A stretch of 64,000 nucleotides of DNA from assembly GCA_047495785.1 (NCBI GenBank), contig JBLDXI010000002.1, positions 310,001 through 374,000 on the forward strand, in the 5' to 3' direction. Under the pieces are notes generated by a model. That model searched no databases and had not been told where the DNA came from. It saw only the letters and a program-made list of their open reading frames with translations. Shown here piece after piece: positions 3,001 through 34,674 of the stretch (the stretch's first letter is position 1; every line of letters starts with the position of its first letter). The position numbers and the translations under genes were made by a program. The DNA is from Lepidodermella squamata. Lineage: Eukaryota > Animalia > Gastrotricha.

Positions 3001-6000
3001 ATGGGTGTTAAGAAAAATACACTGAAAGATCCGCCTTTTTCGCAGCTAATAAGAAAAATCAAATGAAACTCAGAAAAATGCCTATGTACCCGCCTTACTT
3101 TATTTCGATTGCATAGACAGATGTTGATTTATCGAAGGGATAATTCACTGACATTGAAAGGGATGGGACGTAATTCGGGTAAGATACAGAATTGTTCGAT
3201 TCGATAATTCCATATTGACGCCTCGTAGCTAGAAAAAAATTACTTCATGACGATCCTAATAATGCCCTAACTTACCTATAACATTGGTTGCGTAATTTCT
3301 TTGACCTTGACCCGCTGCGCCGTAAGTTGTATTTATCGTGAAATTTGAGCCTCCCACAACTCGTACAAAGCATCTGATAAGAGTCGCGGCTGGTGCAGCT
3401 GTGGGACAGTCTTCAAAGTAAATATTCCGAGTTCTGGTTTCAAGTTGAAAATCTTTGAATATCGAAGTCTCCCCTCCCTCAGGGTTGAGTGATACGACAG
3501 TGAGTCGCTGATTTCCAACAAATTTCGGTGCGTAAAACGAGTCTCCTACGACTGGAATCGGTCCATCGATCAATTTAGGAACGGGTGAGAAGCCGAGTTG
3601 GTATACAAATAACTGGGAATTCGGCCTTCCAACGGACCAGAAAGGGAAGGTGAAAGGGCCGAAATTTTTTACGCCACCCTTGAAGGCAGTATCAGTAGTA
3701 ACTTGGAGGTTAAATCTGAAACAGTTAGGAAAATTCGGCCCAGTTGAAGTGATCCTCATAAATCTATCTGAATGTATTCCGTCAGTGAATAGGAATGTGA
3801 TTCTCGTATTCGTAGTATCCATCAGTGGTAAAATGATGCCGTACTTTGCAACGGGAGCAGTAATATTTGTTAGCACACCATTCACGCCAAAGAAGTACGA
3901 GGCCTTCGTCCAGGTGTAAGTTGTGAAGCCCGGGTCACCCGTAGTTCCCGATAGACGGAAATTATTGCCGCATAGGTTGTTCTGTGGTACGCACTCAAGT
4001 GTAGCGCTTTTGACTGTAACCATATCAGAATAATCAAGTTGGACATAGTCACTTGGCGTATTAAGGCACACGAAATTCGACGACCCAATGACTGCTAGGT
4101 GGGGATTGACCAACCCAGGGGAGCCAGTTATAGCCTGAGGAGTGATGCCGAATAGCGATGCATTTAGCACATAAGGTGAGTAATCCGATGGTAAACGGCA
4201 TGCGAAAGTTTTCAGCTCATTGCAAGACGTAGCCCTCCACTGAAAGGCCGATCTAGCATCAGCGTATACGCAGGGTGCCTGCATATCGGTGCTGTTCAGG
4301 TTTTGATCGATTGCAAGGTTATTCGTCGCACCAGGGCTACTGCCGCTGAAAGCGAACACGTCGGGAGCGGTAAACTTTGCATTGATCCAAATAGAGGACA
4401 GGCCATCACTTGTTTTAAGCATAGCTTCTCGACTGGAGGACCCACTCCCTTGAAACAAAGACCCTCCGGACACTAGATTCGTGCAGTATCGCGAGGCATC
4501 GGCGAAATTCATAGGAATTTTGACGTATAAAATGCAATATGAGCCGAGATAAACAGCAGGCGGCGAGCAACCTACAGCGAGATTAGGACTGTTCGAGTAA
4601 ACAGCAAGAAGTTACCTAAAATTTGAGGTGCTGGAGCTTCGCATAAAGCTTGAGCTGTTCCGCCTTGAACTACGTTCCACGAAGAAGAACCTGGCACAGT
4701 ATAACCCTGTACTGGATTCTGTTCACTACCGATCAAGTTGCTCCGAAACCTGTGTTAGACTCTTATTGAATGAATATGAATCTTCAGTGAATTTAACTTG
4801 TAAAACGAGGAGTGAAGTTGTCCATCCTCCCTATTGCACAGCCCCATAAGAGCATTCGTTGTAGTACCCCTACATCCGATCCATACGCGGCTGTGATTAC
4901 AAAACTCCAAAAACCTTTAATTATATCTTAATTTATCCATTACCTAGCATTCAACGAGTCGATCAAGGAATTCTCAGTCTCGTCATTCGGGTAGAAAAGG
5001 GTTGAGATGGAGTATGTTGCAGCGCAGTAGTTCTTCGCTTCATCGTACCCTGTCAGATCGGGACCCATCAATCGGTAGCATCTCGTGTAGAAAGGCGCAA
5101 TTGATGTGTAGCCAGGAGGACAGGCTTCAACGGGAAAGAGAGCAATATTGCGATAACCGAATCGAGAAATAATACTCACCTAAATTGCCTGAGTAGGGCC
5201 AGAAACCGATCGAGGTTTCATTAGTTCTTGACATGCTTGACTTGTACAAAGCTATAAGCCCACTTCCTTTCGGACCGCCGCCTAGATCGTTCGAATTTGC
5301 CGGGACTTTCATATTGCAATAACTGTTCTGAACCAGGTAAAACATTGCGTACAGGTTATCGTAACACCGGCAGTAGTAACCGCCCTCGAGACCGGCAAAT
5401 TTCTTGCCGGAATTCTTGCAAAACCACCGACATTTGCTTGCAGACATTGACCGTCGGTCCGCGATTACATAACGCGGGATAGCCTGGTAGGATATGTTGT
5501 AGCAACCAATGTAGTCGGGATGATTGCACCATTTCAAGGCCATGGTTTGCTCGTAAGGGGTCAGAGCTCGATCATAGAATTGCAGACACGACATTGAGCC
5601 GATGAAGTTGTAGTTGTTATCAGAAAATCCGGCTTACATTCGAAAAAATGCTTTAAAACTGTGAATTCTTGGTAAAATACCTACCTGGAGCATCTGCCGC
5701 TGTTCCGATGGTTAAATGTCCCTTGCTTGCCGGGAAATTTACGCCGTCACTGGTTCTTCGCTCCCCAACAACAGCGTTTACAAACCCATCAAGCGACACA
5801 ATCGTCGAATCACTCCCGATTTCGTACAAAAACCCATGCGAATGCCACTGGCCTGTTTTGTAGTTGGAAATCATCACACCATGCATAGCTGCATTACTCG
5901 TGTCATTTTTCATGGGATAGAAAATTGTCCCGTTGACGTAGCTACTCATCAGCCCATTTTTCGAGGTGTAACCTAGGTGGTTCTGGAAATTGTTGAGCCC

Positions 6001-9000: not shown

Positions 9001-11063
9001 CCCTGTTAGTTACATTGAAGAAGTTTTCCACCTCCCATTCATAGTGGGAATCAGCTGTGGCCGCTTTATTGATGACGAACCCTGAAATCTCGTTCAGCGT
9101 ATTGTCAACTGATCCGTCAAGCTGGCCAAGAATGAGACCTTGCCTGATTCCTAGTTTCATCACGTCAATATTAACTGTCTGATTGAAGCAAGTTCCGCCA
9201 AGACGATTGTTCTTAACTACCAAGCGATCTTTGCTAAGGAAGATTGAGATAACTTGCCACCTGCCAACAAGTTGGCAACCAGTAAGCGTAGTTAAGCTTC
9301 GAGGTGTAGATTCGTTTTCGTAACGCAGACCAAGAAACAGCTCGTTGTTGCCGTATAAATGAACGCCTCGGCGATTACCAGGTGACGATCCATTCGTCAT
9401 GGTATTCACGATGTGGCAGAAAACCGGAGCATTCTATCAAAGAAAATGAGATGATACAACCTAAAGGTGAGTTATCCACATACGAGTGTTGATTGAATAT
9501 ATAACCAGAAAGACCAGGAAATTGTGCTGTCTGGTGTCAATCCAGCCGTAAACTTTGAATCGTAATTTCCGTCAAAATTTAAAAAGCTGACGCTTGAATT
9601 AGAACCAGAGACGAATTTGACACTAGTTCCAAGTAGTGAGCCGGATGGGCCACTGCCACGATTCGTAAGTTGGAAACGAACTGCCCCGGTGATCAGCGAC
9701 TGTGGCTCGAAGGGAAGAATGCCCGGCTCGATATGAGTAAGATCGCGACCGGCGTAAGCCAACGTCAACGGCAGTGCGACGGCTTCGTACTTGTGGAACG
9801 TGCCGGTGACGTCAGTGGCGTGCAGCACGAATCGGCAATAGCTAGGCAACACGCTCGCACAGGGCACAGCGACGTAAGCTGCGGCGTCGGTATCAAACGC
9901 GCCGCAAGCATCAGTACTGCCTACTAACGAGCCTGCGGAAAATTAAAAATATGTGTGTTTAAATTAGTTGAAAATTGAAGGAAATAATCAGAGATCACAA
10001 TGCAATCAGGTGATGCAAACATTTCAAAGGCAGTACGATGGTTTGTCACAGTGTGCGAAGTAGGATCCGGGTGCAGAGATGTTTTCTAGGAAGTTTCTAG
10101 CACCTAGCCGAAGAAACCAAAGGGTCGCGACACCCCAGCAACCCTATACTTCGCACCATAGTTTATCAAATGAGGTTATTCACGCATAACTTTTCAGCTA
10201 CGTCCCCATGCAAAGCAAATCTCTATAGATATGCTTTTATAGATATGCCTTGTTGAACTGTTTATGATTCATTATCAGGATTTCAAATTTCTCCAATGAA
10301 GAATTGAAAGTGATGTGATCACATCGGAAAGTTTCAGGTTTCAGGATGGTTGAATTTAATAAATGAAGATTAAAAGAAGTTTCAGCTTTGAATCTCCAAG
10401 CTGAAACACAATCTCAAAGTACCACGTTGGCATCACGCTCAAAGTTTCATGTTCCAGTACGATAACCGATAGCAGTGATACATGTAGCAAAATCGAATGC
10501 TCACGCTTGAAAGGGGTAGTTCTTGGAACCTCTTAGTTAGCCCAGCGAATTGTAGGAGAACATATTTTCTCTTTTCTCGTTTGGGAATTTATATCTCTCT
10601 TCAAAGGTTCTTTTCATTCTTCTGATTTTTTCAAGCCTCGGCGAGCTAAGCCCGTCCAATAAGAGCAACATTGAGTTCAGTCTTACCGATAGAGTAGTAA
10701 GGTAAATAAGCGCCATCCGGTGTCAACCACTGACTTCCGTTCCACCTCCAGCCCATCCACTTCAACGGAGTATCCATTTCGAGGGCCGGTGGGGCTATGT
10801 TGTAGTGAACCGCCAACCGAGCCCCGGGAGCCAAAGCAGCGCATTTCGTATCGGCTGTAGCCCAATCCGCCTTCACTTTATTCACCGTGAAACAGGCCTT
10901 ATTGACCTCGATCCAGCCGTTAGGACAATAACCTGGAAAATTTACAATGAAGGAAATGGCTAGGCATTACTTAATGACAGGGCTCACGATATGATGCAGC
11001 ATTTCCAACCAAAATATAAAGTAACAACTGTAATCTCAGCAGGAAAGAAGCTCCAGGCTTCAT
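1..11063 (-). CDS. Giant multi-exon secreted/cell-surface protein (signal peptide, at least 8 C-type lectin domains, ~5 LamG/concanavalin-like repeats, WSC, PKD); polycystin-1-like lectin receptor; 3' end lies outside the window
   Basis: ATG at 11063 gives MKPGASFLLRLQLLLYILVGNAASY (signal peptide). A GT-AG intron joins it to RYCPNGWIEVNKACF...WMGW...CGAF...C...LPSYC (CTL). LamG-like repeats start GSYWPLT/AFWPL/GFWPLN (8940-7270). WSC domain YIGCY...KCRWFCKNSGKKFAGLEGGYYCRC (5127-5594). PKD motif EVGWGD...RVFPDAGNYTMILRAYN (2115-2300). Further CTL domains at ~5150, 4570, 1810, 1310, 850, 430 and 30. The minus-strand frame from ~1320 to 1 is open and runs off the window. Confidence 0.85.
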
Positions 11064-11571
11064 TCTTTCAGTAAGTCGGACCATTACTAAATAATACCTG
11101 TGTTTAATGCCAGCTTACACAAGAAAACGAATCACTGCTTCGACCACGCATTTATCTGCGTTTATTCTATTTTTGTACTGGCTACGTCCGTTAAAAAGCT
11201 ATACGTTGAAAAGTAATAATCGATTTCGGCCCAGCCAATAAAACGCGTGGTGGAACTGCGTCAAGAAAATGATCTTCGCCGTTTATTTGAATTTTTAATT
11301 AACCGCACGATGCAGAATCCACAGTTACGGCAAGGTAGGGCTGCCCGGCCAAGGCTTTGAGCGGCAGTTTTTCTGTGCGTGAATTATCGAGCTAGCCGAG
11401 GAAAATCGATTCTCCACGGTCTAGGTGCATTGCGAAGCTTCACAAAGAAAAGGTTGAATTTTGCGCTGCGAAATCTCCCCCAACGAAATGTTCATCGATT
11501 CAGTCGAATGAAATTTCTAAATTATTGCATAAAATTAAACAAATTCTGTCAGTTTGCCGTGAAGCTTTATT

Positions 11572-12594
11572 CTACACCGCGTATTCCTGAAATTTAGAGT
11601 TATCATTTACTCGAAGGTAGGAATCAATGAATGACTTTTTTTCTGAAGGAATAGGCCTGAAGTATTTTACGATGAAGTTGTCAATATTCTGTGCCATAAC
11701 GTCAAGCGCATCGTGATCTAATTCAACCGCTGAACTAATCCTTGCCACCAAAGGATCCTTTGATAAGCGACCCTCCACTGAGGTTGTTACATCTTCCTTC
11801 TTCATACGATCCAAACGTTCCATCCGATCGTCCCTCGTCTCACGGTTTGGATGTTTTGTGAACAATTTGACACTTAGGGCTGTCAGAGTTGCTCCGAAAA
11901 GCACTGCGACGAAGAGATACGCAGCAGCCATCATCATGTTTGGTTTTTTCCGAGCAGGGCCGGGTTCCAATTGCAGTTGTTGTGCTCGAGAGGTCTCAGA
12001 CCGAGGCTGGCCGCTGTCGCTTAACTGGAAGCCCCCGGCAGGGTTCCCAACGGACGAGGATTGTTTGCTGCTGCTACTACTACTGCTGCTGCTGCTCGAG
12101 GACTTTTTAGATGGGTCGAATTTATCGCTCCAGTCAGGTTCCTCCGGAACTTCAGCTCCAGTATTCGAGCCCTGATCAGACAATGTTGGTTCAGGGTCAG
12201 TATTACCCCATACAGGATTGGTAACTTCAGTTTCGCCCCAGTTGTTTATGTAACCCTGGCTGCGAGACAGGCTGCCCCAAGGCCGGCGCACGTTGTAACC
12301 CATCGCACTCATCGCAAGACTGATGTCGCTGCTGGAACTTTTCGCCCTCGCATCGTTGTCAAGCGCAAAGCCTCGAAATACGGAATCGTAGAGGCCAGGC
12401 TTGTTGAGATCACTCGGTTCACTGTTGACTCTTCTCAGCGGAGCGGCAGCAGCCTTGACCCTGGCTGGGCCTTGAAATAACTGAGACGCAGATTTCTGAA
12501 TTTGACGGGGAAGTCGGCCAATCACAGCGCTGCAATATATCTCATCACAGAGTAGAGCGCTCGATAATAGAATGGGAAATATTTTGACACACGT
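11572..12594 (-). CDS. Orphan type I membrane protein (family member 1); ACG stands at the expected start codon
   Basis: Signal-peptide-like CVKIFPILLSSALLCDEIYC, Ser-rich ectodomain, TM AAYLFVAVLFGATLTALSV. Shares RGFALDNDA and a cytoplasmic module with 18405..19391. Confidence 0.7.
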   Translation of the reverse strand, partial: TCVKIFPILLSSALLCDEIYCSAVIGRLPRQIQKSASQLFQGPARVKAAAAPLRRVNSEPSDLNKPGLYDSVFRGFALDNDARAKSSSSDISLAMSAMGYNVRRPWGSLSRSQGYINNWGETEVTNPVWGNTDPEPTLSDQGSNTGAEVPEEPDWSDKFDPSKKSSSSSSSSSSSSKQSSSVGNPAGGFQLSDSGQPRSETSRAQQLQLEPGPARKKPNMMMAAAYLFVAVLFGATLTALSVKLFTKHPNRETRDDRMERLDRMKKEDVTTSVEGRLSKDPLVARISSAVELDHDALDVMAQNIDNFIVKYFRPIPSEKKSFIDSYLRVNDNSKFQEYAV

Positions 12595-12967
12595 GTTTCT
12601 TGTTTTGTCATTGCTCTCTTTCACGGCAATTTAAATGCCTACAAAAGTCATTACATTTTAAGATTGCTTTTTCAAAAAGTTTATGATGAAACATTTTTGC
12701 GACTTGAAAATACATGTTGAACATTCGATTCTTCGGTTAGGGCTGAAGAACTGCCTGAAGCTCAGTGATTTACCACGGCAGAAATTCTGACCATTGACCA
12801 TTTTTCTGGATACGAATGCTAGAGAAGTTACAGAGTTTACTATTTATTTCAATTCACGGATATTCGCTTGTGATAAATTATAGATACAAAAAGTCAATGT
12901 AAAGCTTCTGCCGCATGAAACCGTTGAAACATCGGCAGAAGTTGAAGCCAGAATTCCTCATCGCCAG

Positions 12968-13480
12968 CTAAATTTCGATTTCTTCATCGTTGAAACCTCC
13001 TTCATAACCTCCGTCCGAAGCCTCGTTTATCTCCATCAAAAATTCATCATTCAGCACAGATGAATCATCCGGAATAGGAAAAGAACTCAACATGGCTAGT
13101 GATGAGTCATGATCGTAGTCTCTGTTGCCCTTCATCAATGTTCGAAGTGATAAAATATCTTTCCCTGATTCAATCAAATCAATTTTTGAAAAGTCTTCTC
13201 TCGAATCAACCAAGCAGCCATCAGTGCTGCGGAATATTGAGTTCCCCGATTTTTTAGCCGGGGTGTTCGCAGTAGTGCAATATCGCCCGTACAAAATGAA
13301 GCTGGCAGCTACGACAGCTAAAGCGCAGAATAACCACAATGAGTTGAGGAATAAGCTCGGCTTCCTTTTTGGCTTATCGTGGTCCAAACTGATACCGCCA
13401 ATAGAGCTGCTTCGAGCGAGTAGTAGGCGTGATTTTTCAAGCTGATTTGAATCGTCCTTTGGGGATCGCAATTCGACCAT
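12968..13480 (-). CDS. Orphan single-pass membrane protein, possible short/divergent member of the same family
   Basis: 170-aa ORF with TM LFLNSLWLFCALAVVAASFILY and an acidic tail. Its DHD...P.P...D tail is weakly similar to the neighbours. No signal peptide seen. Confidence 0.55.
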   Translation of the reverse strand: MVELRSPKDDSNQLEKSRLLLARSSSIGGISLDHDKPKRKPSLFLNSLWLFCALAVVAASFILYGRYCTTANTPAKKSGNSIFRSTDGCLVDSREDFSKIDLIESGKDILSLRTLMKGNRDYDHDSSLAMLSSFPIPDDSSVLNDEFLMEINEASDGGYEGGFNDEEIEI

Positions 13481-14126
13481 GCTTACTCTTCTTTGAATCT
13501 TTCGGGGCTTGCAACTTGCAAAGCTACGATTCGGGTTGACAAGAGGTTTTGAAAGGCTGAGATACGCTATAGTTATAGGGTGGTATCAACCGTTTAACAG
13601 GTTTTGGGCAGAATATAAAGTACATAATTGAGTTGGATTTTTTTGACGTTATAAATGAACGCAACCGGGCTTTTATTCTGAAGTCACTATCAAGTCAATT
13701 TTACTATTTCAAAAAGACAATAGATTTGTAACTGTCGATACAATGGAAAATAAGATGAGAAAATAATAAATGTCGCTCAAGTTAATGATTAGCAATAAAA
13801 GTTTATTGATAATTAACTGGCATGCCACTAAATTTGTTATTCGATATTTGTTATTTGGCATCAATAATTAGTGATCGGTCAGTGATCAGTAATTATCGAT
13901 TTTACATTGCATTCCTTTTTCTCTAATAATCAATTAGTGCAAAACGTTAATAAAAGCAACAAGCAACACCCACTATTCAAGCCACGCAAAGCTAATAATC
14001 ACAACGTGAAACAGGTATTGGGACGACGGCAGGTCAAAGCCCGGAAAGCCCAGAAATTACTGCAACAGGGATAAGACGAGTTAAAAATCATTCTGCCTGC
14101 TTTCAGGCTGCTTATGTCAAGGAAAC

Positions 14127-15897
14127 TTATAAGCGTCCGGCAAGCTCTTTGATAACATTCCAAGCAAACTCAATATCCGCCTCGTTCGTAGAAGAAGCGC
14201 AAATCGCCAATCGTAGCATGTACACGTTTCTGTTAAAACAGTTTTCTCACCACACGGCATCAGACAATTTCTCTTACTTGACTTTGGTCGGTATCAAATG
14301 AATCCGCCCGTCGTCGATAATTGCCTTGTACAAGGCTTCATTAACTGCATTCCCGTCGTCTCCATTCCGTCCTTTCAGGCGGAAACAGACCAGTCCCATA
14401 ATGACCTTCGCTGCGATTTCGAACCTCTCATCAGATTTTACCAAGTTCTCAAAGAGTTTGGCTAGTCGAATGTGCTTTCTGATGTATTCCTTCAAGCATA
14501 TGGACATTTGTTAGGAGTTTGGTACTCATGTGTTGCTAATTTACCTGAATTCCTCGAACGCCATACAGCCTTAGGACGAAGAACAGTTTCAAGGCTCGAA
14601 AGCGTCTTCCTAACGGGATCTGCCAGTGACGATAATCTGGCATGGCCTGGAGATCTTGATATTTGTGTCTCATGAGGATCGAATCCACGCTGAAAGCATC
14701 CACCTAGGAGCAAAGTATTGGCATAACTCATAAAAGAGAACAAATATCGAAAACTCACGACGTCAGAAGCATCCCGAAACCAAGTTGCAGAGCAATCGAA
14801 GTTAACTAGCATCCATTTGTGAGGGTTGAAGCTGAATGAATCAGCATGTTCAATGCCATTCAATAGATACCGGTATTCGGGGCAACAAAATGCACTGCCA
14901 GCGTATGCTGCGTCAATATGAAGCCAAATCGGTGTATTACCGCTGTTTTTGTTGAAGGCTTCAATAACCTGAGCAATTTCAACCAAATTGTCGAAAGCGC
15001 AGGTGCTGGTCGAACCCAAAGTCGCCGAGACAAAGAAGGGAATTTTGCCCTCTTCGACAGCTTTATCGAGAGCTCTTTTCAGCGCATCGCCTCTCATAGC
15101 ATGTTCTTGATCCGATTCGATCTTGACGAAATGCTGAATTGCGCCCATAAGGCCAGCTCGTTCAGCGCAGAAGTGAGCCTGGTCCGAGGTGAAAGCAACT
15201 AATCGGTCCATAACTTTTCCCGGTGTCGATTTAGGGTCCCTTTCCAACATTTTTGCGATAGTCCTACTACGAGCTGCTAGTAGGCTTGTGAATATGGATT
15301 CGCTAGCTGTTCCATGGATGATTCCACCACCTCGGCCGCGGGAGCTGAACAGGAAATGTTCGGGTAGCTGCAGCATTTTAGCAAGCCAGTCCATCATAAC
15401 CGTCTCAAGCTGAAATTGAAAATGGAGATGGGCTTAAGCTCAACGGTAGAAAGATAACCTCAGTGCAGCTCGGGGAAGAAGCCCATGTGAAACCAATGCA
15501 GCCGATAGCATCGGATAAAATATCCGCAATAATTCCCGGGTAAGAATTAGCCGTTGGATAGTAAGCGAAAAATCTGGAAACATTTTAATGGAACTTGAAA
15601 TGCTCAGCTATGAAAAAACTTACTTTGGCGAGTGCCAGTGTGTAACTCCTGGTAAAATGACTGTATTTACATCATTCATTACAGCTTCATAGGTTTCAGG
15701 TTCTTCAGGAGCCTCAGCTGGGAGAAGTGGAGCCAGAAATCCAGGCTTGAGATTAGATGGGAAGACCGGCCTGGGAAGAAAATACAATGAGAAATTGAGG
15801 AGATGAATGTTACTTACCTGTCTCGAATGTCTTCCAAGTAATCTGCCGCAAAGTCGATCATCTCCTTACCTCGTTGACGAAATTCGTTCGCATTCAT
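14127..15897 (-). CDS. Ddc-like: Group II PLP-dependent aromatic L-amino acid decarboxylase family protein (DDC-like), catalytic-loop Tyr replaced by Leu
   Basis: Spliced through short GT-AG introns: [21 protein letters not shown]...[21 protein letters not shown]...[29 protein letters not shown]...[19 protein letters not shown]...SFNPHKW (PLP Lys)...[17 protein letters not shown]...GLVCFRLKG...[12 protein letters not shown]. Stop at 14129-14127. QIPLGRR (Gly) is DDC-type rather than HDC/TDC-type (Ser). Confidence 0.95.
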
Positions 15898-17390
15898 TTT
15901 TGTGAAGGTTTTGACAGCAGGGGGTTGAAAATCAAAGTCACCTATCAGAAGAAAATTGAATCATACATTACCAGGAATAATTGAAAATGAAAATCGCTTG
16001 AAATAGGCCAAGCTTTTGCGCCTTAAGGCTGAATTATTTGTTATTAGTCTGAAGAAGACATATTTTGTGAAGCGTGCAGTTCTAACATACACATACGGTT
16101 GGCGCCTTGGTTAGCTCGTCCGTTTGTATTTTTTTCAGACTTCGAACTTTTGTTTACAAATTTTCTAATTAGGTGTCTAATAAAAAGCGGTAATCTGTAT
16201 GATGTTGCTTCACGTTCATAATAAAACCAATTATAATTGAACCAAACGTGAACTAAAATCTGATAATTCCTCCGACGCAAAAAACCTCATTACGCATTAA
16301 TTTCTGAGATGGCTCATTCTTACGAAAAAAAACTTTGCACGTCTTTTCATCGACCATCATCACTACGAGACATTCCACTCACAAACCATCGTAATTTCGA
16401 GTGATAATGGCCTCAAATATGACTTAGAGCATGAAGCTTTGATTCCAATCGAGAAAGATTCGTGAGATTTGAAAAAACTTCATAATCACGAGTCGAAGTT
16501 TACTAGAGGGAGCGTTTTCGAAATTCAAAACGAGTGATCTAACATGTATTAGAGATTAGAGGGAATTGTCGCTCGAAATTAAGATGCTGTGGGTGGATTG
16601 TCTCGTAAATGAATCGCCGACTCGTTTCAACGTCTCCACAGCGCCGACTGGCTACTTCCGGCTCGCACCTATTTGGGCCTAGTTGCGCAATATACCCAAG
16701 GCTGTACTGTTTTTCATTTTTCATATAGCTAATTGAATTTTCCACGTGAATAAGAAAGCAAAATGTAAAATAGTTGACGCGTGTTAGCTTGAACCAAACT
16801 CGAATACGACCTTTCCACCACGCTGAAAAGCCTCGGTCTCATTCTTACGCTCCAGATAACGTGAAGATCAATTCATAAAATTGAAATGTCGTAGTAAAAT
16901 GGGGACGGAGGCCTCTGACATAGGAAGCTTTTCATGTCCATTTCCCAGAATCAGAACGGAGTAAAACTCTGCATGCGACGAGAATTGAGCAGGATACGCA
17001 GTGCAATGATTAGCAACATATAAAAACACATTTTATGATATGTACATAGATGCCAATGTTGGGATGAGCAAGCAAAAAAACGAGTGGGGTTGATTTAGAA
17101 TCGGCAACAGCAGCTGAACATACCGCAGTCTCTGAAAAAGCAGCGACTTAAAGACGTCAAATCAAAAATTGCTAGATATTTGCTGTCTGAGAAGGAAATA
17201 GGACTAAAGTGTACCTACGTGCTAGGGACGTTAACAAAATGAGTGCGGTAATAATACTAACACATTTTCACCAAATAAACTATCTATCTCGCGATTGATT
17301 TGAGATGTGAGTAACCGAAAAATCAATCTTAATGATTTCTGAATAGTTGTTCGGTAGAAGCGCCATGTTTTAAGCCAGAGCCCTGAGGCT

Positions 17391-18404: not shown

Positions 18405-19391
18405 ATGCCGCGCTTCTCAGCGATTTTCATATCGTTTGCACTTTTGAACAGTCAAATTTTCGCCCAAGTTCTAACATTCGATGACTTGGCATTGGCAAAC
18501 GGCCAATTTAAGAATTTGTTTGAAGTCCGACGCCATGTTCCGCGAGCCAATTCATTCGCCGGTTTCAGGCAACCTGGCATAGAAGCTCCTAAAAGGTCCA
18601 GTAGTGTTGGCGCTGGGGCGAGAACTTCGATCTATCGCGGATTTGCTCTCGACAATGATGCAGCGTCAAGTTTGACTTCTGATGACATGGATCTCGGTGA
18701 GACTGCTTTGACGTACAGCGGTTATCCAAGAGGAAGTATACGAGAACCCGATGTTCTTGACAGCTGGAGTATTACACCGGAACAAGCCGCCAAAATGCAA
18801 AGGGAGAGTGACAAGCTATCAGAGGCTGGATCAGATGATGTTTTCCTACCAGATTCTAAGGATGAAATCGCGAAAGCTTCAAGTTCAAGCTCAAGTGGCG
18901 GAAAGCAGATTGCTCGCCCGATGCAAATCGACTCTGGCGACTTAAGTCTCAAGCCTAAAATCGAAATCGATGAACCCTCAAAATCGGCACCCGGAGCCTC
19001 GCAATTGAACAAGTGGATTCCACGGCTCTTAGTCGGAGGATTGATTCTGGTCGGCATTACTCTCATTGGGATCGCTATTGGCTACCTTACAAGAGACACT
19101 CGAAATGAACCAGCCCGGCCACTGGACGATTACAAACAAAGAATGGCTCTTTTGACAGCAAAATCTGACCTTCACGGCCGCACATTCGGCGAGAAGAGGG
19201 ATTCATCGGTGATGAATCATCTTGCATCAGTACTCAACTTCGATCAAGAGACTCGACTGTTGTTAGGGCGTAATTTGGCTGATTTCCAAAGTTCAATGGA
19301 ACATCTACCATCGCCTTCCGGGGATGCGGTGAGCTCGGATACCATCATACGCTTTTCTTCGAAGGTTCAAACGAAAGATTACATCATATGA
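18405..19391 (+). CDS. Orphan type I membrane protein (family member 4), intact and intronless
   Basis: Signal peptide MPRFSAIFISFALLNSQIFA, YRGFALDNDA motif, Ser-rich stalk, TM LLVGGLILVGITLIGIAIGYL, and cytoplasmic VL.FD.E.R...GRNL..FQ module shared with 17724..18248. Confidence 0.8.
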   Translation: MPRFSAIFISFALLNSQIFAQVLTFDDLALANGQFKNLFEVRRHVPRANSFAGFRQPGIEAPKRSSSVGAGARTSIYRGFALDNDAASSLTSDDMDLGETALTYSGYPRGSIREPDVLDSWSITPEQAAKMQRESDKLSEAGSDDVFLPDSKDEIAKASSSSSSGGKQIARPMQIDSGDLSLKPKIEIDEPSKSAPGASQLNKWIPRLLVGGLILVGITLIGIAIGYLTRDTRNEPARPLDDYKQRMALLTAKSDLHGRTFGEKRDSSVMNHLASVLNFDQETRLLLGRNLADFQSSMEHLPSPSGDAVSSDTIIRFSSKVQTKDYII

Positions 19392-20041: not shown

Positions 20042-21937
20042 ATGCTACAAACAATTCTATTAGCAGCTGGCCTCATCCCAACCGGCTTGATTCTGCTGCA
20101 GTGGCTTCACCTACTGATTCGAAGGCCTAAGGACATCCCGCCCGGCCCATTCCCTCTACCTTTGGTTGGATCTTTCTACTATTTCTGGCCGTATCGCAAG
20201 GACTATGCCCAAGCATTCGTGCAACTACAGAAAACTTACGGCGAAGCTGTCACTATCTATTCTGGCTGCTCCTTGGATGGCATGCTGACGTTCGTCATGG
20301 GCTGGGATGCAATGATGGAGGTTTCAACTGGGCGTCAAATCGCTGAAATCGCCGCGAATAGGTCCCCGAATTTGGTTAAAAACAGAGGCGTCACTTCAGG
20401 CATTGCAACGGCTGATTACGAAGATCATCGATTAATGAAGCGATTTCTGCTAAAATCATTTAAAGACCTTGGCCTTTCCAGCGGCAGAGTTAGCAGCCAT
20501 ATCGAGGACGAAATAACGAGCATGCTAGGGATTATCGAGGAAACCAAGGGGACGCCGTTCGACCCGGAGTTGACACTGATGGAGACTATGTCGAGTTGCA
20601 TTCTGCTGACAGTTTACAGCCATCGATTCGATTTGAACGATCCTGTATGCGCGAAGCTATACAGAGATGCTCTAGGGTTTTTCGACAGCACCATCGTCCA
20701 GCTGATGTTCCTGCCTTACCTCGACAAAATTGGCAAATTCGTTCCAGACAAAATGGCTGAGTAAGTCTTTCATTCTCCTGTTATGAAAGGAACGACGTGT
20801 AACTCATTCCAGAGCTGAACGTCTTATGGAGAGGACAATGGAAAAGTGGCTGAAAGATGAAATCGAACAGAGGCGGGCAACTTTCAATCCTGAGAATCCA
20901 AGAGATGTTTTGGATGTATATCTAGCCGAGCAGTCGGACGACATCAAGTTCCAACTTGAGCCTTGGTTCAAAAGGACAATGGTGGATGTGTTTCTTGGAG
21001 GCAAGTTATACAACCAGCGAAACCTATTACTGAAAGCAATTTTTTAGCAATGGACACAACTGCAAGGCTTACGGCATGGACCCTGTTCTACCTTGCGCAT
21101 CTCCCAGAGGAGCAGGATCGATTATTCCGCGACATTGAGTCCGTCGTAACAGCATCAGGATTGCCGTCACCGGTCGACAGAGCGAAATTGCCCCGCGTTC
21201 AAGCTCTGATCGAAGAAGCATCTCGCTACTCTTGCATGACTGTGTCGAGTTTCGCTCGCCGTTGTTCCGAGCCTATCGAATTCGGCACAAAGAAACGATT
21301 CAGGCTTGAAAAGGATGCTCAAGTCACCCTGGTTTGGTACCCGTCGCATTTTGATAAGGAATTCTGGGGAGATCCGGCGAATTTCCGCATCGATCGTTGG
21401 CTCGATGCTGAGGAGAAGGAATTTGTGCCCCGAGGTCATACAATGCTGTTCGGCTCAGGCAGGCGGGCGTGTCCGGGCGAGCAGATTGCGAGAAATTTGT
21501 TGTTCACGGGTATTACTTCGATTATTCAACGATTTAAATGGCGCTTGGCTGAGCATGTTCCTATCGACGGTTTTAATTACCATTGTGTTTGAGGTTGTAA
21601 GTTGAAAAAAATCCGCACGCTGATTGGTCAGTTGGCTCGTATCCATGACTCCGCCTTGCTACTTGATCGTGCGATCTATATAATTTGTGACTTTTATTAT
21701 TTTTATGAAGGCCGTATCGTAGCACGCGTTTCCAACAAATGCGTAAAACCATTCATAAAAAGATATTTTTTGCAAACATTTTATGGATCGCACGATCAAG
21801 TAGCAAGGCGGAGTCATGGATACGAGCCAACTGACCAATCAGCGTGCAGATTTTTTTCAACTTACAACCTCAAACACAATGACGTTCTAACACGCACACC
21901 GCCGAAGCATAAGCTCGTTTTCACTTGTCGGCAATAA
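20042..21937 (+). pseudogene. Cytochrome P450 (CYP2-clan-like), copy 1; last exon interrupted by a MITE, giving a premature stop at 21590-21592
   Basis: N-terminal anchor + PPGPFPLPLVG; introns 20761-20812 (GT-AG) and 21001-21047 (GC-AG); I-helix VFLGAMDTT, EEASR (ExxR), FRIDRW, heme motif FGSGRRACPG. The native C-terminus (VLTRTPPKHKLVFTCRQ*) resumes after the insertion. Confidence 0.85.
21581..21881. mobile_element. 301-bp MITE with ~95-bp TIRs (5'-CATTG...CAATG-3') and a 2-bp AC target-site duplication; CMC/EnSpm-like by termini and TSD length
   Basis: Near-perfect inverted repeats at ~21581-21676 and ~21786-21881; AC at 21579-80 and 21882-83. Removing the element and one AC restores the P450 frame seen in copy 2. 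Confidence 0.92.
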
Positions 21938-24757: not shown

Positions 24758-26350
24758 ATGCTTCAAACACTTCTATTAGCAGCTGGCCTCATCCCAACCG
24801 GCTTGATTCTGCTGCAGTGGCTTCACCTACTGATTCGAAGGCCTAAGGACATCCCGCCCGGCCCATTCCCTCTACCTTTGGTTGGATCTTTCTACTATTT
24901 CTGGCCGTATCGCAAGGACTATGCCCAAGCATTCGTGCAACTACAGAAAACTTACGGCGAAGCTGTCACTATCTATTCTGGCTGCTCCTTGGATGGCATG
25001 CTGACGTTCGTCATGGGCTGGGATGCAATGATGGAGGTTTCAACTGGGCGTCAAATCGCTGAAATCGCCGCGAATAGGTCCCCGAATTTGGTTAAAAACA
25101 GAGGCGTCACTTCAGGCATTGCAACGGCTGATTACGAAGATCATCGATTAATGAAGCGATTTCTGCTAAAATCATTTAAAGACCTTGGCCTTTCCAGCGG
25201 CAGAGTTAGCAGCCATATCGAGGACGAAATAACGAGCATGCTAGGGATTATCGAGGAAACCAAGGGGACGCCGTTCGACCCGGAGTTGACACTGATGGAG
25301 ACTATGTCGAGTTGCATTCTGCTGACAGTTTACAGCCATCGATTCGATTTGAACGATCCTGTATGCGCGAAGCTATACAGAGATGCTCTAGGGTTTTTCG
25401 ACAGCACCATCGTCCAGCTGATGTTCCTGCCTTACCTCGACAAAATTGGCAAATTCGTTCCAGACAAAATGGCTGAGTAAGTCTTTCATTCTCCTGTTAT
25501 GAAAGGAACGACGTGTAACTCATTCCAGAGCTGAACGTCTTATGGAGAGGACAATGGAAAAGTGGCTGAAAGATGAAATCGAACAGAGGCGGGCAACTTT
25601 CAATCCTGAGAATCCAAGAGATGTTTTGGATGTATATCTAGCCGAGCAGTCGGACGACATCAAGTTCCAACTTGAGCCTTGGTTCAAAAGGACAATGGTG
25701 GATGTGTTTCTTGGAGGCAAGTTATACAACCAGCGAAACCTATTACTGAAAGCAATTTTTTAGCAATGGACACAACTGCAAGGCTTACGGCATGGACCCT
25801 GTTCTACCTTGCGCATCTCCCAGAAGAGCAGGATCGCTTATTCCGCGACATTGAGTCCGTTGTAACAGCATCAGGATTGCCATCGCCAGTTGACAGAGCG
25901 AAATTGCCCCGTGTTCAGGCCCTAATTGAAGAAGTATCCCGCTACTCTTGCATGACCGTATCAAGTGTCGCCCGTCGTTGCTCCGAGCCTATCGAATTCG
26001 GCACAAAGAAGCGATTCAGGCTCGAAAAGGATGCTCAAGTCACCCTGGTTTGGTATCCGTCACATTTCGATAAGGAATTCTGGGGGGATCCGGAGAATTT
26101 CCGCATCGAACGTTGGCTCGATGCTGAGGAGAAGGAATTCGTGCCCCGAGGCCATACAATGCTGTTCGGCTCAGGCAGGCGGGCTTGTCCAGGCGAGCAG
26201 ATTGCGAGAAATTTGTTGTTCACGGGTATTACTTCGATTATTCAGCGATTTAAATGGCGCTTGGCTGAGCATGTCCCTATGGAAGGTTTTAATTACTTTT
26301 TACTACGCACCCCACCAAAGCATAAGCTCGTTTTCACTTGTCGTCAATAA
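24758..26350 (+). CDS. Cytochrome P450 (CYP2-clan-like), copy 2, intact
   Basis: Three exons (introns 25477-25528 GT-AG and 25717-25763 GC-AG); PPGP, GAMDTT, EEVSR, FRIERW, FGSGRRACPG; ends LVFTCRQ* with AATAAA overlapping the stop. Confidence 0.95.
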
Positions 26351-26469: not shown

Positions 26470-28865
26470 ATGTCATTCGTTCTACTTCTATTCGCCTGTG
26501 TAGTTTCTACTGCGCTTTCTGATGATAATAGCAATTCTACAGATCCGAGCCCGCTGTTTATGATACCGTTCGACAAAATTTCTGGATTTGAACCTCTAAT
26601 ACCAACCAGCGTTTCAAAGTTGGCTGAAATCGGTCCTCGTGCGAAAATATCTGCTCTGAAAGGGCCGTTCGGCGAGTTGGAGACTTCTGCTGAGGTGGAC
26701 TCAAGTTCCGGAACTAGCTTACTTGCCCAATATAATTTTTCTTATCCCGATAAAAAAGGGCAAGCGTTCACGTTGGCATTTTATCTAATGGTGAACGTGA
26801 TTAAAGATTGCCCGTTTTTATTTGCTGGCAAAGAATCGGAGTTCAAATTGGCAGCTTGCTGGAAATTGATTGATAGAGGAAATTGGCAATTCTACGCTTT
26901 CCGGTTTTCTACAAAGCGGTACAAATATGATGTCGTCAGTGCATCTGGAGCTATTTTGGAGCGATTTAACAAAACCAAGAAGTAATTTTAGCTACCAAAA
27001 AATGAAGTTTTAAATAGACTTTTTTCAGTACCAAAATCAGTGCTATGCTCGGGGCCACGAAAATGGCGATCGATTTGCCTCCTGTTAATCGTATCGCTTG
27101 TCTAGTAATGTTCGACGCCGATATTACCCCTGCTCAAATCAGCCGAATCCCCTGCTCCTGTAAATTACGCGGAAAATGCACGTCCGACGTTCGCTTGGGG
27201 AATGCTGTCTTCACTGGACCAAAGATTGATAATCTTATTGGATTCTGGCCAATGTTCGAGTTCGATTCTATCAACTCTGGGTCGCAAGAGTTTGTCAAAG
27301 GAGACCCGCCTAGTGATGTACGGGCCAAAGCAATCGTCCCGGTAACACGAGGCCCTTTGCCTAACAATCAGCTGAGAAATGTGAAATGTTTCCAGTCAGA
27401 AAACGGCATGGCTATCACAACAACCTCGATGTACAGCCTCAACGATACATCTTTCACAATATCTTTCTATAGATACATAACGGATGACTCTGAAACTCTA
27501 GCAGAAGTCTTCAATACTGGCGCAAACGGCTTTAAGATCTACCTCGGAAAGGGCCTAGCCAAATTCGAAAATCCTGGCTCCACCTTATCTGAAACAGAAA
27601 TACGTTGGGATCACAAGCCGAATGCCTCGTGGGAATTCATAGGAATCACGTTCGACAAAGAGTCGCAAACTCTCAGTCTCGTTAATGAAGACGGAATTGT
27701 CGTATCATCTAATCAATTCGAAGGAATCGGGACTCAGGAGGAAACTCCATTTAGCCTCGGCCATTATTCAACCAGCCCTGATAGCACCGCAGTTTGCTTC
27801 ACAATTCACAACACCGTCTTACAGCCTGACGACTTTAAGTCACTTCGATGCATGTGTCGAACTCTTGGTAAATGCAGCTTAGCCAGAACTTACAGAGGAC
27901 CTCGATTCGAAGCATTGTTAGCGTATCTACCTTTCGATATGGAGATGAAACTGCATAACGTAGTGTTAGATAGGCGAATTTCCCTATCATCACGGCCGTC
28001 GACGACAAAATGTGACGAAGCTAACGGGCCGTTCGGTCCCCAGCAGTCTTTCTGCACCCAACAAGACGATAGAGAACCATTCGCTGCTTACGATATCTCG
28101 CTGAATGAGAGACTCACCGAAGCAACGATGGTGTTCTATTTCTATCGAGGGACATCGCCAATGTCTGAAGCGGCTATTCCAGTCGTGAGATTTGTATTTG
28201 GGGTTAACATTACTGGATGGTACACGAGTCAAGGCAACTTCATCTTCGAATTTTTCGAAATTGGAGTCCTCAAATGGCCTAGGGACCTTAACGTTACAAA
28301 CGAATGGTTCTTTGTAGCCCTATCGCTCAAAATCGATGGCAACAATCTTATGATGGCTAAATACAGGGAGAGCGGAGATCTTATGAGTTCTACGACAACG
28401 AGTCTCAAGAGTTCACCGTATCTCATTCCAAATCTAGAATTCGGACCATTATCGAAAGGAGATGGCTTGAGCTGTTTCTTACTGTTTAATCAGGTTCTTA
28501 CCCCAGAAGAAATCGCTTTCATAGCCTGCGTTTGTCGAAATAATGGTAATTGCCCGGAAGCTGATCCACTGAATGGAGTTCTAGATGTCAGTAAGATTGA
28601 ACGATTGCCTTGTGTCGAAGCTAACACGGATTCAACTGAAACCAAGAAACCTAACTTCTGCAAATGCCGCCCTGGTTACGCTGGAAGGCTGTGCTCTCAT
28701 ACGTCATCAGTAACCGATGAGAGGAGTACAACGGACGTCATGGAAACAACTCCCGCTTTTGAAGCTCTGACAACAACCCTAAAGAGTAGTGCCATGTCAC
28801 TATCGTTTACTCATCCAATCTTAATTTACGCATTTTCAAAGCATCTGTTGTTACGTTTCTTGTAA
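26470..28865 (+). CDS. LamG/pentraxin-like repeat protein A: signal peptide, 3 LamG-like domains each closed by C.C...G.C, EGF-like domain, Ser/Thr stalk, hydrophobic C-terminus (GPI-like)
   Basis: Exons 26470-26981 and 27029-28865 (47-nt intron). Motifs LIGFWPM, FTISFY, WEFIGITFD, CFLLFNQVLTPEEI; EGF-like NFCKCRPGYAGRLCS; C-terminus PILIYAFSKHLLLRFL. Confidence 0.8.
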
Positions 28866-28932
28866 ATAAAAAGCCCAGCTTAAAATAACTGAGTTTGTAG
28901 CTTCAACATCCCCTTGTCGATGCAACAAGACT

Positions 28933-31900
28933 ATGATGGCTCCTGGGTTAGGATTGTTTCACATTTTTGGTCTTCATTTGTTAATCTTTATGAGTTTGGC
29001 TCTCTACCAGGGCCCAGCTTCTGATAGCTTGATATTCATGCTATCTTTTGACAACATCTCTCGCTTCGAGCCGACTTTTGAAACCGATCATTTAGCCTTC
29101 GAAAGTGGCGCCTTATTTTACCGATGGAAGACAGGACCTCACGGGAAACCGAGGACGTCAATCGCGCTAACCAATCATTCGATAAGTCCCATTCTTGCAA
29201 GATACGAGATTTCGCTGGGAGAAATTGTAGACCGAGGTGGATTTACAGTTGCCTTTTACCATAAAGCCATTCCTATTGTGAGGCAGTCGTGTTTCAATTT
29301 GCTCAGATTTCAAAAAGGCAAAGAGACAACTTTTAATCTTGAGAAATGCGTTTCACCTAATGAAAAATCGTATTGGGATTTCGATGCCTACGTTTTCAAT
29401 TCGGAAAAGGGAAATTTTACTTTGTATGGTCCATCCGGGGCAATCGTCCATTCTGCTGATAAAAGGTTTGTTTTCAACTCAAACAATTTGCTGAAATATG
29501 TATTTTTGCCTAGTTTCTCAGTCGAATTATTGGCATCCAGCGCAACAATGGTTATTGAACTGCCGAAGTTTCACAAACTAGCTTGTTTAATAATGTACGG
29601 GAGGCCATTGACTGCGATAGAAATCTCGAGGTTACCATGTCATTGTAAAATGCGGGGACTGGCATGTCCTGACACTGTTAGAAGTTTCAGAGGCCCGAAA
29701 CCTGAGCATCTAATCGGGTTCTGGCCAATGTTCGAATTTGACGCCGCAGATTCTTGGACTAAGGAATACGTCACACGAACGCAGCCACTTGCAGTGAATG
29801 CCAGGAAATTCCAGCCGAGATATCGCGGACCGTTGCCATCTGAAACTAAATGGAGACCTTCTATCTTCAGGTCGATTAACAGTAGTTACGCAGTTACAAC
29901 GCCTTGGATGTACAGCTTGAATGGAAAATCGTTCACTATAGCGTTTTACGTCTATCGAGAGTTGATCGATACGACTGAGCAATCTTACTTCTTCGAGATT
30001 TCTGAAGGCTTTTCCATCAATATCGCCAACGCAACAATCCAAATTGAAGGCAGAAGTTTAGGCTCTGCTGCAATCTTGAAGATCAAGGAAGCTTTGGATG
30101 GTAATTGGATATTCCTAGGCTTGGTTTTCGATATTGATAAGAAAATAATTGCATTAATGGATGAAGAAGGAAATGAGTTGTTTTCCGATCGCAACATTCA
30201 AGGTTTCACTTTGCCTGAAAATGCAAGCTTTTCATTGGGATATAAATCATCAAAAAATGTTGGATCAACTGTTTGCTATACAGTTTATGATACAGTTCTT
30301 GAAGCTGAAGACTTCAAGCAACTTAGATGTGTTTGCCGAACGACTGGGCAATGCAACTTAGACCGAACCTTTCGAGGACCTCGAGTCGAATCTTTGAAAG
30401 CTTATCTTCCTCTGGATGAAGATTCTGGGTTGGAAAATATTGTGAAACCCTCCGAGTTTCGACTTGTCTCTGAAATGAACGGAGCAAAGCAGGTTAAGAA
30501 GATTGATCCATTTGGCATTGAAAAGCCCATCTACGTCCAATCTTTGAATGAGCAGCCATTAGCTTGCTATAACTCAAGCATTGAAGGTCTATTCCTTGAA
30601 TCTACAATAGCCTTCTACTATTATAGAGGGCTAGTGTTTGGCGCAGATTAGACCAGTGCTAAAACTAACCGCTGGAATTCAGGTCGAAGTGATTTACAAC
30701 CCTGACGATGGGAGAGTCAGAATGCTTGTTAAGGACTCGGAGGATAACCTGTTGATGGATTTAAGTTGGTGGAAATCTGTCACTTCTGACGATTGGGTAT
30801 TTTTAGCCTTTTCCTACAAGATTACTGGGGATAGGATATCCATGAACATCACTCTTGAAAATGGCGAGGTAATAACAAGAACCGAAGAATTTCCTGATAT
30901 GGATCAGAGCGAAACTTCAACAATTCAGCTAACTCTTGGTGAGCTGACACCTGATCATGGATTCCGGTGCTTTCTACTTTACGATGAAGTTCTAACCCCG
31001 GCAGAAATCGCGTTCCTCCCTTGCGTTTGCAAAAATAACGGGATATGCCCAGATTCAGATCCATTGAACGGGAAACTTGACTTGAAGAAAGCCGATATCC
31101 TGCCTTGCGTGGCTGAAAATACTCAGAAGTTCCGGGTAGGGACGACAAACTTTTGCGTATGTCGCCATCCATTCTATGGAAGGTTGTGTTCGAAAACATA
31201 CGCAGCAGCGACCACTCCATCGAGCACGTCAACAACTAAAGAGCGAAAAGATGTGGCTGATGGACCCGTCTTCATGCTTCCCCTTGACCAATCATCGGAA
31301 TTCGAGCCAATTTTCGGATCAAATGTCTTAATTCTGAAAAACCATTCCTCTACTGCTACATTTGAAACTGGGCCATTCAACTTTCCAAACTCTTTAGTTG
31401 CAGCGCAAAAACATGAAACTATCGCTACTTATGACATTAGTTTTGGTGATAAATTGGAGGAAGATGGTTTCACAATTGCCTATTACCACTATGCTCCGCC
31501 CAATCGACTCAAACCTTGCTTCCGAGTTGTTGCGTTTTACCACGGTGCGATATCAACTTTGGTTGTTCGGCAGTGTACCGATTTGTCGCAAAATGGTATA
31601 TGGCAATTCGTTGCCCAAGTTTTCGACCTATCAGAGTCACTCCTTAACTTCTATTCGGCGTCTGGGACGATAAGGAGATCATCGAATTTCAGGTATTTTA
31701 CTGAATTAGAATGAAAATTTGTAAAATTTTCTCTTTTGATCGCAGTTTTTCGATCGAATCCTTGCTAGCTAGTTCAACTATGGAAATTACCCTACCAAAA
31801 TCGCATAAATTATCCTGTCTCGTGGTGTATGGCCGTAAATTGCAACCTGTTGAGATAACTAGGATTCCATGCATTTGCAAGAACCGTGGGCATTGTCCAA

Positions 31901-33594: not shown

Positions 33595-33813
33595 AACCTG
33601 GAGTGACACATTTGAAGCCTAACTTTATAGTGTGAGAAGTAGCGGGGGGACGGTACCGCCCCCTCGAGAGGTCCAGAACCCTGCTCAAAAAAGAAAAGGG
33701 GTAACCCTTTATCAACGCGGCTTAAAATATACTCACACTCTCTTAGAAAAAGGAAGACGAGAAGCACCTGAAAGCATCTGATATTGATTTTGAAAATCTC
33801 CTGGTATTAGTTT

Positions 33814-34520
33814 TTTTGCCCCTCCGGTGCCTTAGTACCTCCTTAGGGGAGATCCAGGTTCATCCTGGTGATCTCTCTGGATCTCTAACCGTAACACCTG
33901 GCAGCTTCTAATACTGATTTTAAAATTCTCCGTACTTGAATTAGTAAAGAATTTCTGATCGTTCAGAGAGATCATGACCGCCCAAAGTTATTCTAAGAAA
34001 TGGGGTTGTATGTCAAGTTGACTGATGAAGATCTCGTCAGACTCGCTATTTGAAGATGAACTCTCTGAACGATCATTTCGTTACTAAACCGAGTACGGGG
34101 AATTCGAAATTCTCCTATGATTGAGGCTAAAAAACGATACAGAAATAGTGTTTCTGTATTCCTGTACAATACAGAAACACTTTTATGAAGATGGACTTTT
34201 TATTATCGCATTTTCCTATATAAATGGCGTACAAGATCACTTTTTCCCGCACTTTCTAGCTACGTTTCTCCGAGTTTTTAGCAGATACAGAGGAGAAAAG
34301 CAATCTCGGATTTACTCAGAATACAGAAACACTTTTCTTGTACGAATGACTGTATTCATCTTCGGTTCCTGCGGAACCTCGATTCATAAAGTGTTTCTGT
34401 ATTCTGAGCCATCCAAGATTGCTTAAATCAGTATTAGATTTTTCCAGGTGTTACGGTTAGAGATCCAGAGAGATCCCCTGGATGACCCCGACGTGTACTA
34501 CGGCGCCAGAGTGGCAAAAG
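33814..34520. mobile_element. ~700-bp foldback/MITE with ~100-bp outer TIRs and two nested internal hairpins
   Basis: gatctctctggatctctaaccgtaacacctgg...ctaatactgattt (33870-33920) vs aaatcagtattag...ccaggtgttacggttagagatccagagagatc (34425-34475). Internal inverted repeats at 33927-34105 and 34137-34403. Confidence 0.8.
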
Positions 34521-34674
34521 CGAATTTTCCTGATCTATTAATTTTTCAAAGGTTCGACCGGTGATTTTACTTCGTACGCTGTTCGTCAGTGAATACGGGC
34601 GAAATGAAAAATGCCACCTTAATTTGTTAGCGTTCCTCAAAACGTTGCAACACTATTCTGCTGTTATTGGTGCA

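Follow-up and report, generated by a model that had tools for sequence, protein, structure and literature searches.

A 64,000-nt stretch of the genome of the gastrotrich Lepidodermella squamata (contig JBLDXI010000002.1, positions 310,001 to 374,000; hereafter the window) encodes on its minus strand a protein resembling animal DOPA/aromatic-L-amino-acid decarboxylase (DDC), in which the catalytic tyrosine of the large loop is replaced by leucine. The best explanation for the gene is that it is a lineage-specific paralogue of animal DDC, and its product is predicted, with a probability of roughly one half, to be an aromatic aldehyde synthase (AAS) that releases an aldehyde instead of an amine. 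The known aromatic aldehyde synthases arose in plants and one fungus through replacement of the tyrosine by Phe, and in insects through replacement of His192 by Asn. The insect enzyme, 3,4-dihydroxyphenylacetaldehyde synthase (DHPAAS), is called insect-specific in a 2026 paper (PMC13651850). No natural animal enzyme with the catalytic Tyr replaced was found in the literature searched, where the reviews name no sources other than plants, a fungus and insects. If the prediction is true, the gene would represent a third independent route to aldehyde chemistry, within Metazoa, in which evolution made use of the switch known from the engineered Y332F mutant; it would also place chemistry of the 3,4-dihydroxyphenylacetaldehyde (DOPAL) type in a neglected phylum. 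If the protein is inactive or makes amines, it would be merely a divergent paralogue.

Gene structure, catalytic loop and constraint

The minus strand was read between positions 13000 and 17500 and spliced by script, yielding a gene of seven exons with an intact frame and a 488-aa product, interrupted by six introns of 47-55 nt, all of them GT..AG (Table 1). Exons 4, 5 and 6 match the Pfam family PF00282 (Pyridoxal_deC) with E-values of 2.9e-77, 2.5e-10 and 6.1e-9, respectively, over profile positions 80-375, and the protein is a group II decarboxylase dependent on pyridoxal 5'-phosphate (PLP). Exon 4 is identical at 55-57% of positions to the DDC of vertebrates, brachiopods, annelids and insects (about 56% for mammalian DDC), and its comparison with the pig and human DDC structures (E = 9e-75) presented no internal problems.

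Alignments to 250 homologues and to a curated set run without gaps from the PLP lysine to the DYRHWQ motif and place Leu341 in the column of DDC Tyr332. The spliced loop region spans the exon 4/5 junction, the exon 4 side ending in WFRDASDV, and the DPxYLKH motif of canonical DDC reads DSILMRH here, with Tyr332 replaced by Leu341 and Pro330 by Ser339. A sequence-only reading of this DNA had assigned Leu and Ser to these positions, ungapped, and the splice model and alignments bear it out; the QAHFCAERA and AYYP motifs, the lysine of NPHKW, His192 and the open frame that it described are likewise all present. The loss of the tyrosine is not a sequencing slip, since two base changes are required to turn a TAY codon into the CTC observed and the neighboring P330S, L333M and K334R also differ from DDC. 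Nor does a different splice restore DPxY, as had been contemplated: this is excluded by the sequence, because the loop lies entirely in exon 5, no intron exceeds 55 nt and the exon 4/5 join gives an ungapped alignment to the nearest relative, a gene on the ENA metagenome contig L001 that lacks an intron at this point.

The remainder of the active site combines conserved and altered positions. The PLP machinery is complete, with Lys312 (NPHKW) forming the Schiff base, Asp280 binding the pyridine nitrogen and His193 stacking on PLP (numbering of the window protein). In DDC numbering, the retained residues, among them all those required for binding PLP and an aromatic amino acid and for decarboxylating the latter, comprise Trp71, Tyr79, Thr82, Ile101, Phe103, Ser149, His192, Thr246, Asp271, Asn300, His302, Lys303, Leu353-Gly354-Arg355 and Arg447, and the altered ones are F80Y, A151S, T152I, L153F, S193F, S194C, V195A, T245S and N298S, in addition to P330S, Y332L, L333M and K334R in the loop. 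S193F, S194C and V195A sit in the small loop beside His192 (QAHFCAERA). Among canonical homologues, Pro is found at position 330 in 178 of 189, the DHPAAS-like sequences having Arg, and Tyr occurs at position 80 in 8 of 130. A tyrosine five residues downstream of the loop leucine (Tyr346, in RHKY; position 337 in DDC) had been put forward as a possible substitute for the lost residue. It is unlikely to be a special one, because Tyr337 occurs alongside Tyr332 in 13 homologues, 9 of them canonical and 4 DHPAAS-like.

Window positions 14000-16000 (2001 nt) were compared with contigs of two sequencing runs, X1 (DNA) and X2 (probable RNA). Among the 40 listed of 125 differences, 25 are coding, and these divide into 18 synonymous and 7 non-synonymous changes relative to a divergent second copy or strain, which indicates purifying selection on the DDC-like gene. 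One X2 contig is missing intron 5 (14490-14544, 55 nt) to the nucleotide, and a second, divergent X2 contig is joined across intron 6; a transcript of the window gene, or of an allele or strain about 92% identical to it, is thus probably spliced, run X2 being only guessed to be RNA. These data bear on the possibility that the gene was recently inactivated and is drifting towards a pseudogene, as the loss of a catalytic residue and 23 changes at highly conserved columns (see below) might suggest. This reading is very improbable given the intact 488-codon frame, the six canonical introns, the 18:7 ratio of listed variants, the spliced transcript and the intact PLP residues. The gene is not decaying: canonical splice sites, a majority of synonymous changes (18 of the 25 coding differences listed), the removal of intron 5 in the probable RNA run and a branch in the phylogeny little longer than that of the L001 gene all speak against it.

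Two further observations were made on these runs. Run X1 carries both the window gene and a second copy differing by about 9%, with unrelated upstream sequence, recovered as pieces of 224 nt (20 differences) and 418 nt (43 differences and 16 gaps). This second copy is more divergent than the 3% heterozygosity published genome-wide for L. squamata, a species whose published haplotypes are strongly divergent, and it could represent either a diverged haplotype or a paralogue of very recent origin. A third run, X3 (101 Mb), from the same study as X1, contained none of the gene. Many of the X2 contigs covering window positions 14281-15857 fuse the two strands at points about 100-170 nt from each other and look like palindromic library or assembly artefacts.

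Phylogenetic placement and tyrosine loss in other animals

Homologues were sought through a HMMER scan of 1.84 billion representatives and a word-indexed search. Both returned a single close relative, the protein P0151, from two ENA metagenome contigs. The spliced P0151 gene, on contig L001, shares 66% identity with the window gene over the full length, as well as intron positions 1, 2 and 6, and all remaining matches, which extend across all animal phyla, are at most 60% identical. The L001 gene keeps AYFP, HCSVERA and DPVYLKH, and because this nearest relative retains the canonical loop motif, the loss of the tyrosine is lineage-specific. The motif IIHGTASE, which the sequence-only reading had counted among the active-site changes, is common to the window gene and the Tyr-retaining L001 gene, which marks it as a lineage trait lying outside the active-site shift.

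A phylogeny, proposed earlier as a means of checking the assignment, was inferred as a quick tree of 91 rows and a careful maximum-likelihood tree of 39 rows under LG+C20. The maximum-likelihood trees place the window gene and the L001 gene as sisters with support of 100/100, inside the animal DDC clade and among spiralians, with terminal branches of 0.36 and 0.29, respectively. Closer kin were sought with several queries. The exon 5 query yielded no orthologues with DSILMRH and only 7 short matches, to the conserved DYRHWQ part; a scan of metagenome contigs with exon 4 gave only relatives of at most 47% identity, apparently bacterial; and the P0151 protein used as query found no kin closer than 60%. 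The clade is hence essentially unsampled. A tblastn search revealed no DDC paralogue within the window. No synteny was found between L001 and the window, so that the relationship of the L001 gene to the window gene may be one of orthology or of paralogy. Contig L001 is 27.9 kb long, has a GC content of 37.6% and comes from a related animal with a compact genome; its DDC gene (9884-11538, plus strand) has only three introns and neighbors DCAF17, several metallophosphatase-like open reading frames (ORFs) and a HECT E3 ligase.

A residue other than Tyr at position 332 is rare: apart from the window gene, it was seen in 2 sequences among about 180 near-full-length matches to animal DDC. Both are full-length: P0250 from the annelid Owenia fusiformis belongs to the animal DDC clade and has the loop DAAFLK (Phe), and the JGI transcript P0242, which groups with Tetranychus and is chelicerate-like, has DCVILK (Ile). 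An ENA fragment in the animal DDC clade, P0052, reads NPLFLK (Phe), and all three sequences also carry changes beside His192. No further loss was detected among 84 additional top matches to P0151, all of which keep Tyr, and no paper describing P0250, P0242 or P0052 was found in the literature searched. Pro330 is replaced in every one of the three full-length Tyr-less animal sequences, by Ser in the window gene and by Ala and Cys in the others. The three full-length losses amount to three changes on the tree, and a constraint forcing them into a single clade, defined after the tree had been seen, was rejected (delta lnL 100; approximately unbiased [AU] test, p = 1.4e-6); the three losses are independent. 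P0250 and P0242 resemble the window gene in their membership of the animal DDC clade, in having lost Tyr332 and Pro330 and in their changes at 152/153, 193/195 and 298, and differ from it in the separate origin of the tyrosine loss.

Changes accompanying the loss were assessed at 120 columns showing conservation of at least 97% across 96 canonical animal DDCs. The window gene departs from the consensus at 23 of these columns and the L001 gene at 12. The 11 window-only changes (position 332 excluded) include 5, at 152, 153, 195, 298 and 330, that fall on positions also changed in Owenia or P0242, where 1.1 would be expected (p = 0.0015 in a test devised post hoc); for L001 the overlap is at most 1. 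Such a pattern fits a shared functional shift. The substitutions common to the three independent Tyr-less animal enzymes constitute testable residues that may tune reactivity with O2, and the list is useful for enzyme engineering, for instance in benzylisoquinoline or hydroxytyrosol pathways.

The same changes can be read in terms of a crippled subunit, that is, a PLP-binding pseudo-enzyme or heterodimer partner that modulates a canonical DDC in a regulatory or binding role and is capable at most of single-turnover transamination. In DDC each active site spans the dimer, one monomer contributing the large loop and the other the small-loop His; P330S and Y332L together constitute a double change in the loop core, and relaxed constraint could account for the convergent positions. 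That the cofactor and substrate ligands are all kept under purifying selection, that the terminal branch exceeds that of L001 only modestly in length and that independent Tyr-less lineages change at the same extra positions and never at the PLP ligands makes this explanation quite improbable.

Predicted chemistry and its standing

In DDC, Tyr332 protonates the Calpha of the quinonoid intermediate; in the presence of O2 the Y332F enzyme converts its substrate to DOPAL and NH3 and forms no amine, and anaerobically its PLP is converted to pyridoxamine 5'-phosphate (PMP) (PMC7497351). The Tyr-to-Phe change is both necessary and sufficient for the plant decarboxylase PsTyDC to become an aldehyde synthase (bioRxiv 10.1101/404970), and simulations attribute the switch to the lost proton donor and not to O2 access (PMC11308512). 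Insect DHPAAS carries Asn192 and Tyr80 and keeps Tyr332 (PMC13651850). The precedents invoked in the sequence-only reading, namely Y332F DDC, the plant Tyr-to-Phe enzymes and the insect His192Asn enzyme, thus hold in the literature (PMC7497351, bioRxiv 10.1101/404970 and PMC13651850).

For the window protein, an aromatic amino acid would be bound and decarboxylated by the retained PLP and substrate residues. After loss of CO2, the carbanion would not be protonated at Calpha, since Leu341 cannot donate a proton, and would attack O2 to generate an aryl-acetaldehyde, NH3 and H2O2, as in Y332F DDC and plant AAS; an alternative outcome would be protonation at C4', giving aldehyde and PMP. L-DOPA or Tyr is the predicted substrate because the pocket is DDC-like (Gly354, Thr82, Tyr79, Phe103), and the most likely product would be DOPAL or 4-hydroxyphenylacetaldehyde (4-HPAA). 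By analogy with insect DHPAAS, one may speculate that the aldehyde serves in cross-linking of cuticle, scales or egg shell.

The protein could instead still be an amine-forming decarboxylase, in which His193, water or Tyr346 would protonate Calpha and F80Y and S193F would shift substrate preference, for example towards non-catecholic or histidine-like substrates. Compatible with this are the retention of His192, the PLP ligands and the whole pocket, the presence of Tyr346 and the proposal, made in plant work, that a His participates in proton transfer. Tyr80 is moreover the state of histidine decarboxylase (HDC), in which position 354 is Ser; the window protein has Gly354, the DDC and not the HDC state. 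Y332F DDC yields no amine and PsTyDC Y350F yields the aldehyde product only, and the joint occurrence of Tyr337 and Tyr332 in other homologues means that Tyr346 is no compensating novelty, all of which renders continued amine formation unlikely.

Several points weigh against aldehyde synthesis itself or against the evidence gathered for it. In DHPAAS, Tyr332 takes part in holding O2, and its replacement by Phe lowers activity (PMC13651850), so that loss of the tyrosine is no guarantee of efficient oxidation. P330L in human aromatic-L-amino-acid decarboxylase (AADC) is reported to be pathogenic (PMC9121088), so that a loop with P330S may function poorly. Phe is the only replacement with a characterised precedent as an aldehyde synthase, and for the Leu-bearing protein the aldehyde is a predicted product. 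T152I, one of the changes shared with other Tyr-less sequences, is polymorphic, since at position 15294 an X1 contig encodes Thr in place of Ile153. Relaxed constraint on residues needed only for catalysis could produce the same overlap as a functional shift, and both the overlap test and the grouping submitted to the AU test were defined after the data and tree had been seen. The measure of constraint draws on the 40 listed differences, and neither the Leu codon nor the intron 4 junction was seen in the RNA contigs of X2.

The sequence-only reading had proposed an independent, plant-style aldehyde synthase in an animal. Membership of the DDC clade, retention of the PLP machinery, loss of the tyrosine and constraint on the gene are in keeping with that proposal; the window gene is not unique among animals, given the Owenia sequence and the chelicerate-like transcript. 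A broader proposal, to be regarded as tentative and rather doubtful as a whole, is that animals have repeatedly made DDC into a Tyr-less aldehyde synthase, in a gastrotrich, in Owenia and in a chelicerate, with convergent changes at Pro330, 152/153, 193/195 and 298, and that these enzymes would supply DOPAL-type aldehydes for the cross-linking of cuticle, scales or egg shell; in that event, hardening by aldehydes would not be specific to insects.

Genomic setting and comparison with known systems

Table 1. Positions in the window of the DDC-like gene, its exons and selected codons.
Feature	Positions	Strand	Remarks
Whole gene	14127..15897	-	start codon 15897-15895, stop codon 14129-14127; in-frame splice model
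Exon 1	15818..15897	-	intron position common to L001
Exon 2	15624..15770	-	147 nt; length and intron position as in L001
Exon 3	15459..15573	-	carries AYYP; Tyr81 at 15560-15558, equivalent to DDC Phe80
Exon 4	14759..15409	-	PLP-binding core; SESIF 15304-15290; His193 15175-15173; Phe194-Cys195-Ala196 15172-15164
Exon 4, further sites	14759..15409	-	Asp280 14914-14912; Ser307 14833-14831; PLP Lys312 14818-14816
Exon 5	14545..14703	-	catalytic large loop
Leu341 codon (CTC)	14674..14676	-	equivalent to catalytic Tyr332
Ser339 codon	14680..14682	-	equivalent to Pro330
Tyr346 codon (RHKY)	14659..14661	-	equivalent to position 337
Exon 6	14278..14489	-	intron 5 (14490-14544, 55 nt) precisely skipped in a run X2 contig
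Exon 7 and stop codon	14127..14229	-	intron position common to L001

The window has a GC content of 42.6%, against the 43% published for the 122-Mb L. squamata assembly (PMC11660948), and no Rfam matches; Pfam searches of neighboring ORFs revealed no pathway gene with an obvious link. On either side of the DDC-like gene, in divergent orientation, lies a gene for a single-pass membrane protein, at 11572-13480 (minus strand) and 18405-19391 (plus strand). The two are remotely related paralogues (25% identity, E = 9e-9) with a common RGFALDNDA motif and Ser-rich stretches; the ORFs of both were without a Pfam match. Two tandem cytochrome P450 genes lie 4-10 kb from the DDC-like gene and about 4.7 kb apart (20042-21592 and 24758-26350, plus strand), and their duplication is very recent, since 239 of 240 positions are identical in their N-terminal exons. 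Long ORFs of 572-693 aa at 27045-36924 and 42395-44476 (plus strand), without a Pfam match except for a weak Laminin_G_3 at 35179-36924, may form a lineage-specific family. C-type lectin domains occur in two minus-strand ORFs (1389-1931 and 3256-4512), and the plus-strand ORF at 51287-52240 encodes a TENT5/FAM46-like nucleotidyltransferase (PF07984, E = 3.8e-47).

Compared with canonical animal DDC/AADC (EC 4.1.1.28), the window protein is alike in length, N-terminus, PLP site and substrate pocket, and differs in lacking the Tyr332 and Pro330 of DPxYLKH and in its altered small loop. The pig and human DDC Y332F mutant, a decarboxylation-dependent oxidative deaminase (Bertoldi et al. 2002, reviewed in PMC7497351), shares with it the animal DDC scaffold, the loss of the proton-donating hydroxyl at the same position and the retention of His192 and Lys303. 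That mutant is engineered and has Phe, whereas the window protein is natural, has Leu and carries in addition P330S, L333M, S193F, S194C, V195A, F80Y, N298S and the changes at 151-153.

Insect DHPAAS (EC 4.1.1.107) is, like the window gene, an animal DDC-derived paralogue with an aldehyde product, predicted in the present case, and the two have in common Tyr80, a residue other than Pro at 330, Ile331, Val328 and Thr248. The insect enzyme has Asn192 and keeps Tyr332, whereas the window protein keeps His192 (His193) and has lost Tyr332, and in the LG+C20 tree the window gene falls outside the DHPAAS clade formed by P0008, P0009, P0039 and P0067. Convergence on DHPAAS was considered and rejected, as an unbiased 20-site signature was matched at 6 of 20 sites, within the range of canonical DDCs; a hand-picked 6-site signature was matched at 6 of 6, but its sites had been chosen after seeing the data and it was not used as evidence.

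The plant and fungal aromatic aldehyde synthases (AtPAAS, Rr4HPAAS, the Petunia and rose PAAS and the Psilocybe AAS; EC 4.1.1.108/109) are, like the window gene, natural paralogues of aromatic amino acid decarboxylases in which a residue incapable of donating a proton has taken the place of the loop Tyr, and loss of this Tyr has been described as a 'molecular fingerprint' for predicting AAS (bioRxiv 10.1101/404970). These enzymes have Phe and belong to the plant tyrosine decarboxylase (TyDC) clade, whereas the window protein has Leu and belongs to the animal DDC clade; a plant-clade representative known from sequence alone, P0131, also has Leu at the Tyr position. The plant and fungal enzymes fall on the other side of the 91-row tree, against common descent with the window gene, and any mechanism shared with them would be analogous, not inherited.

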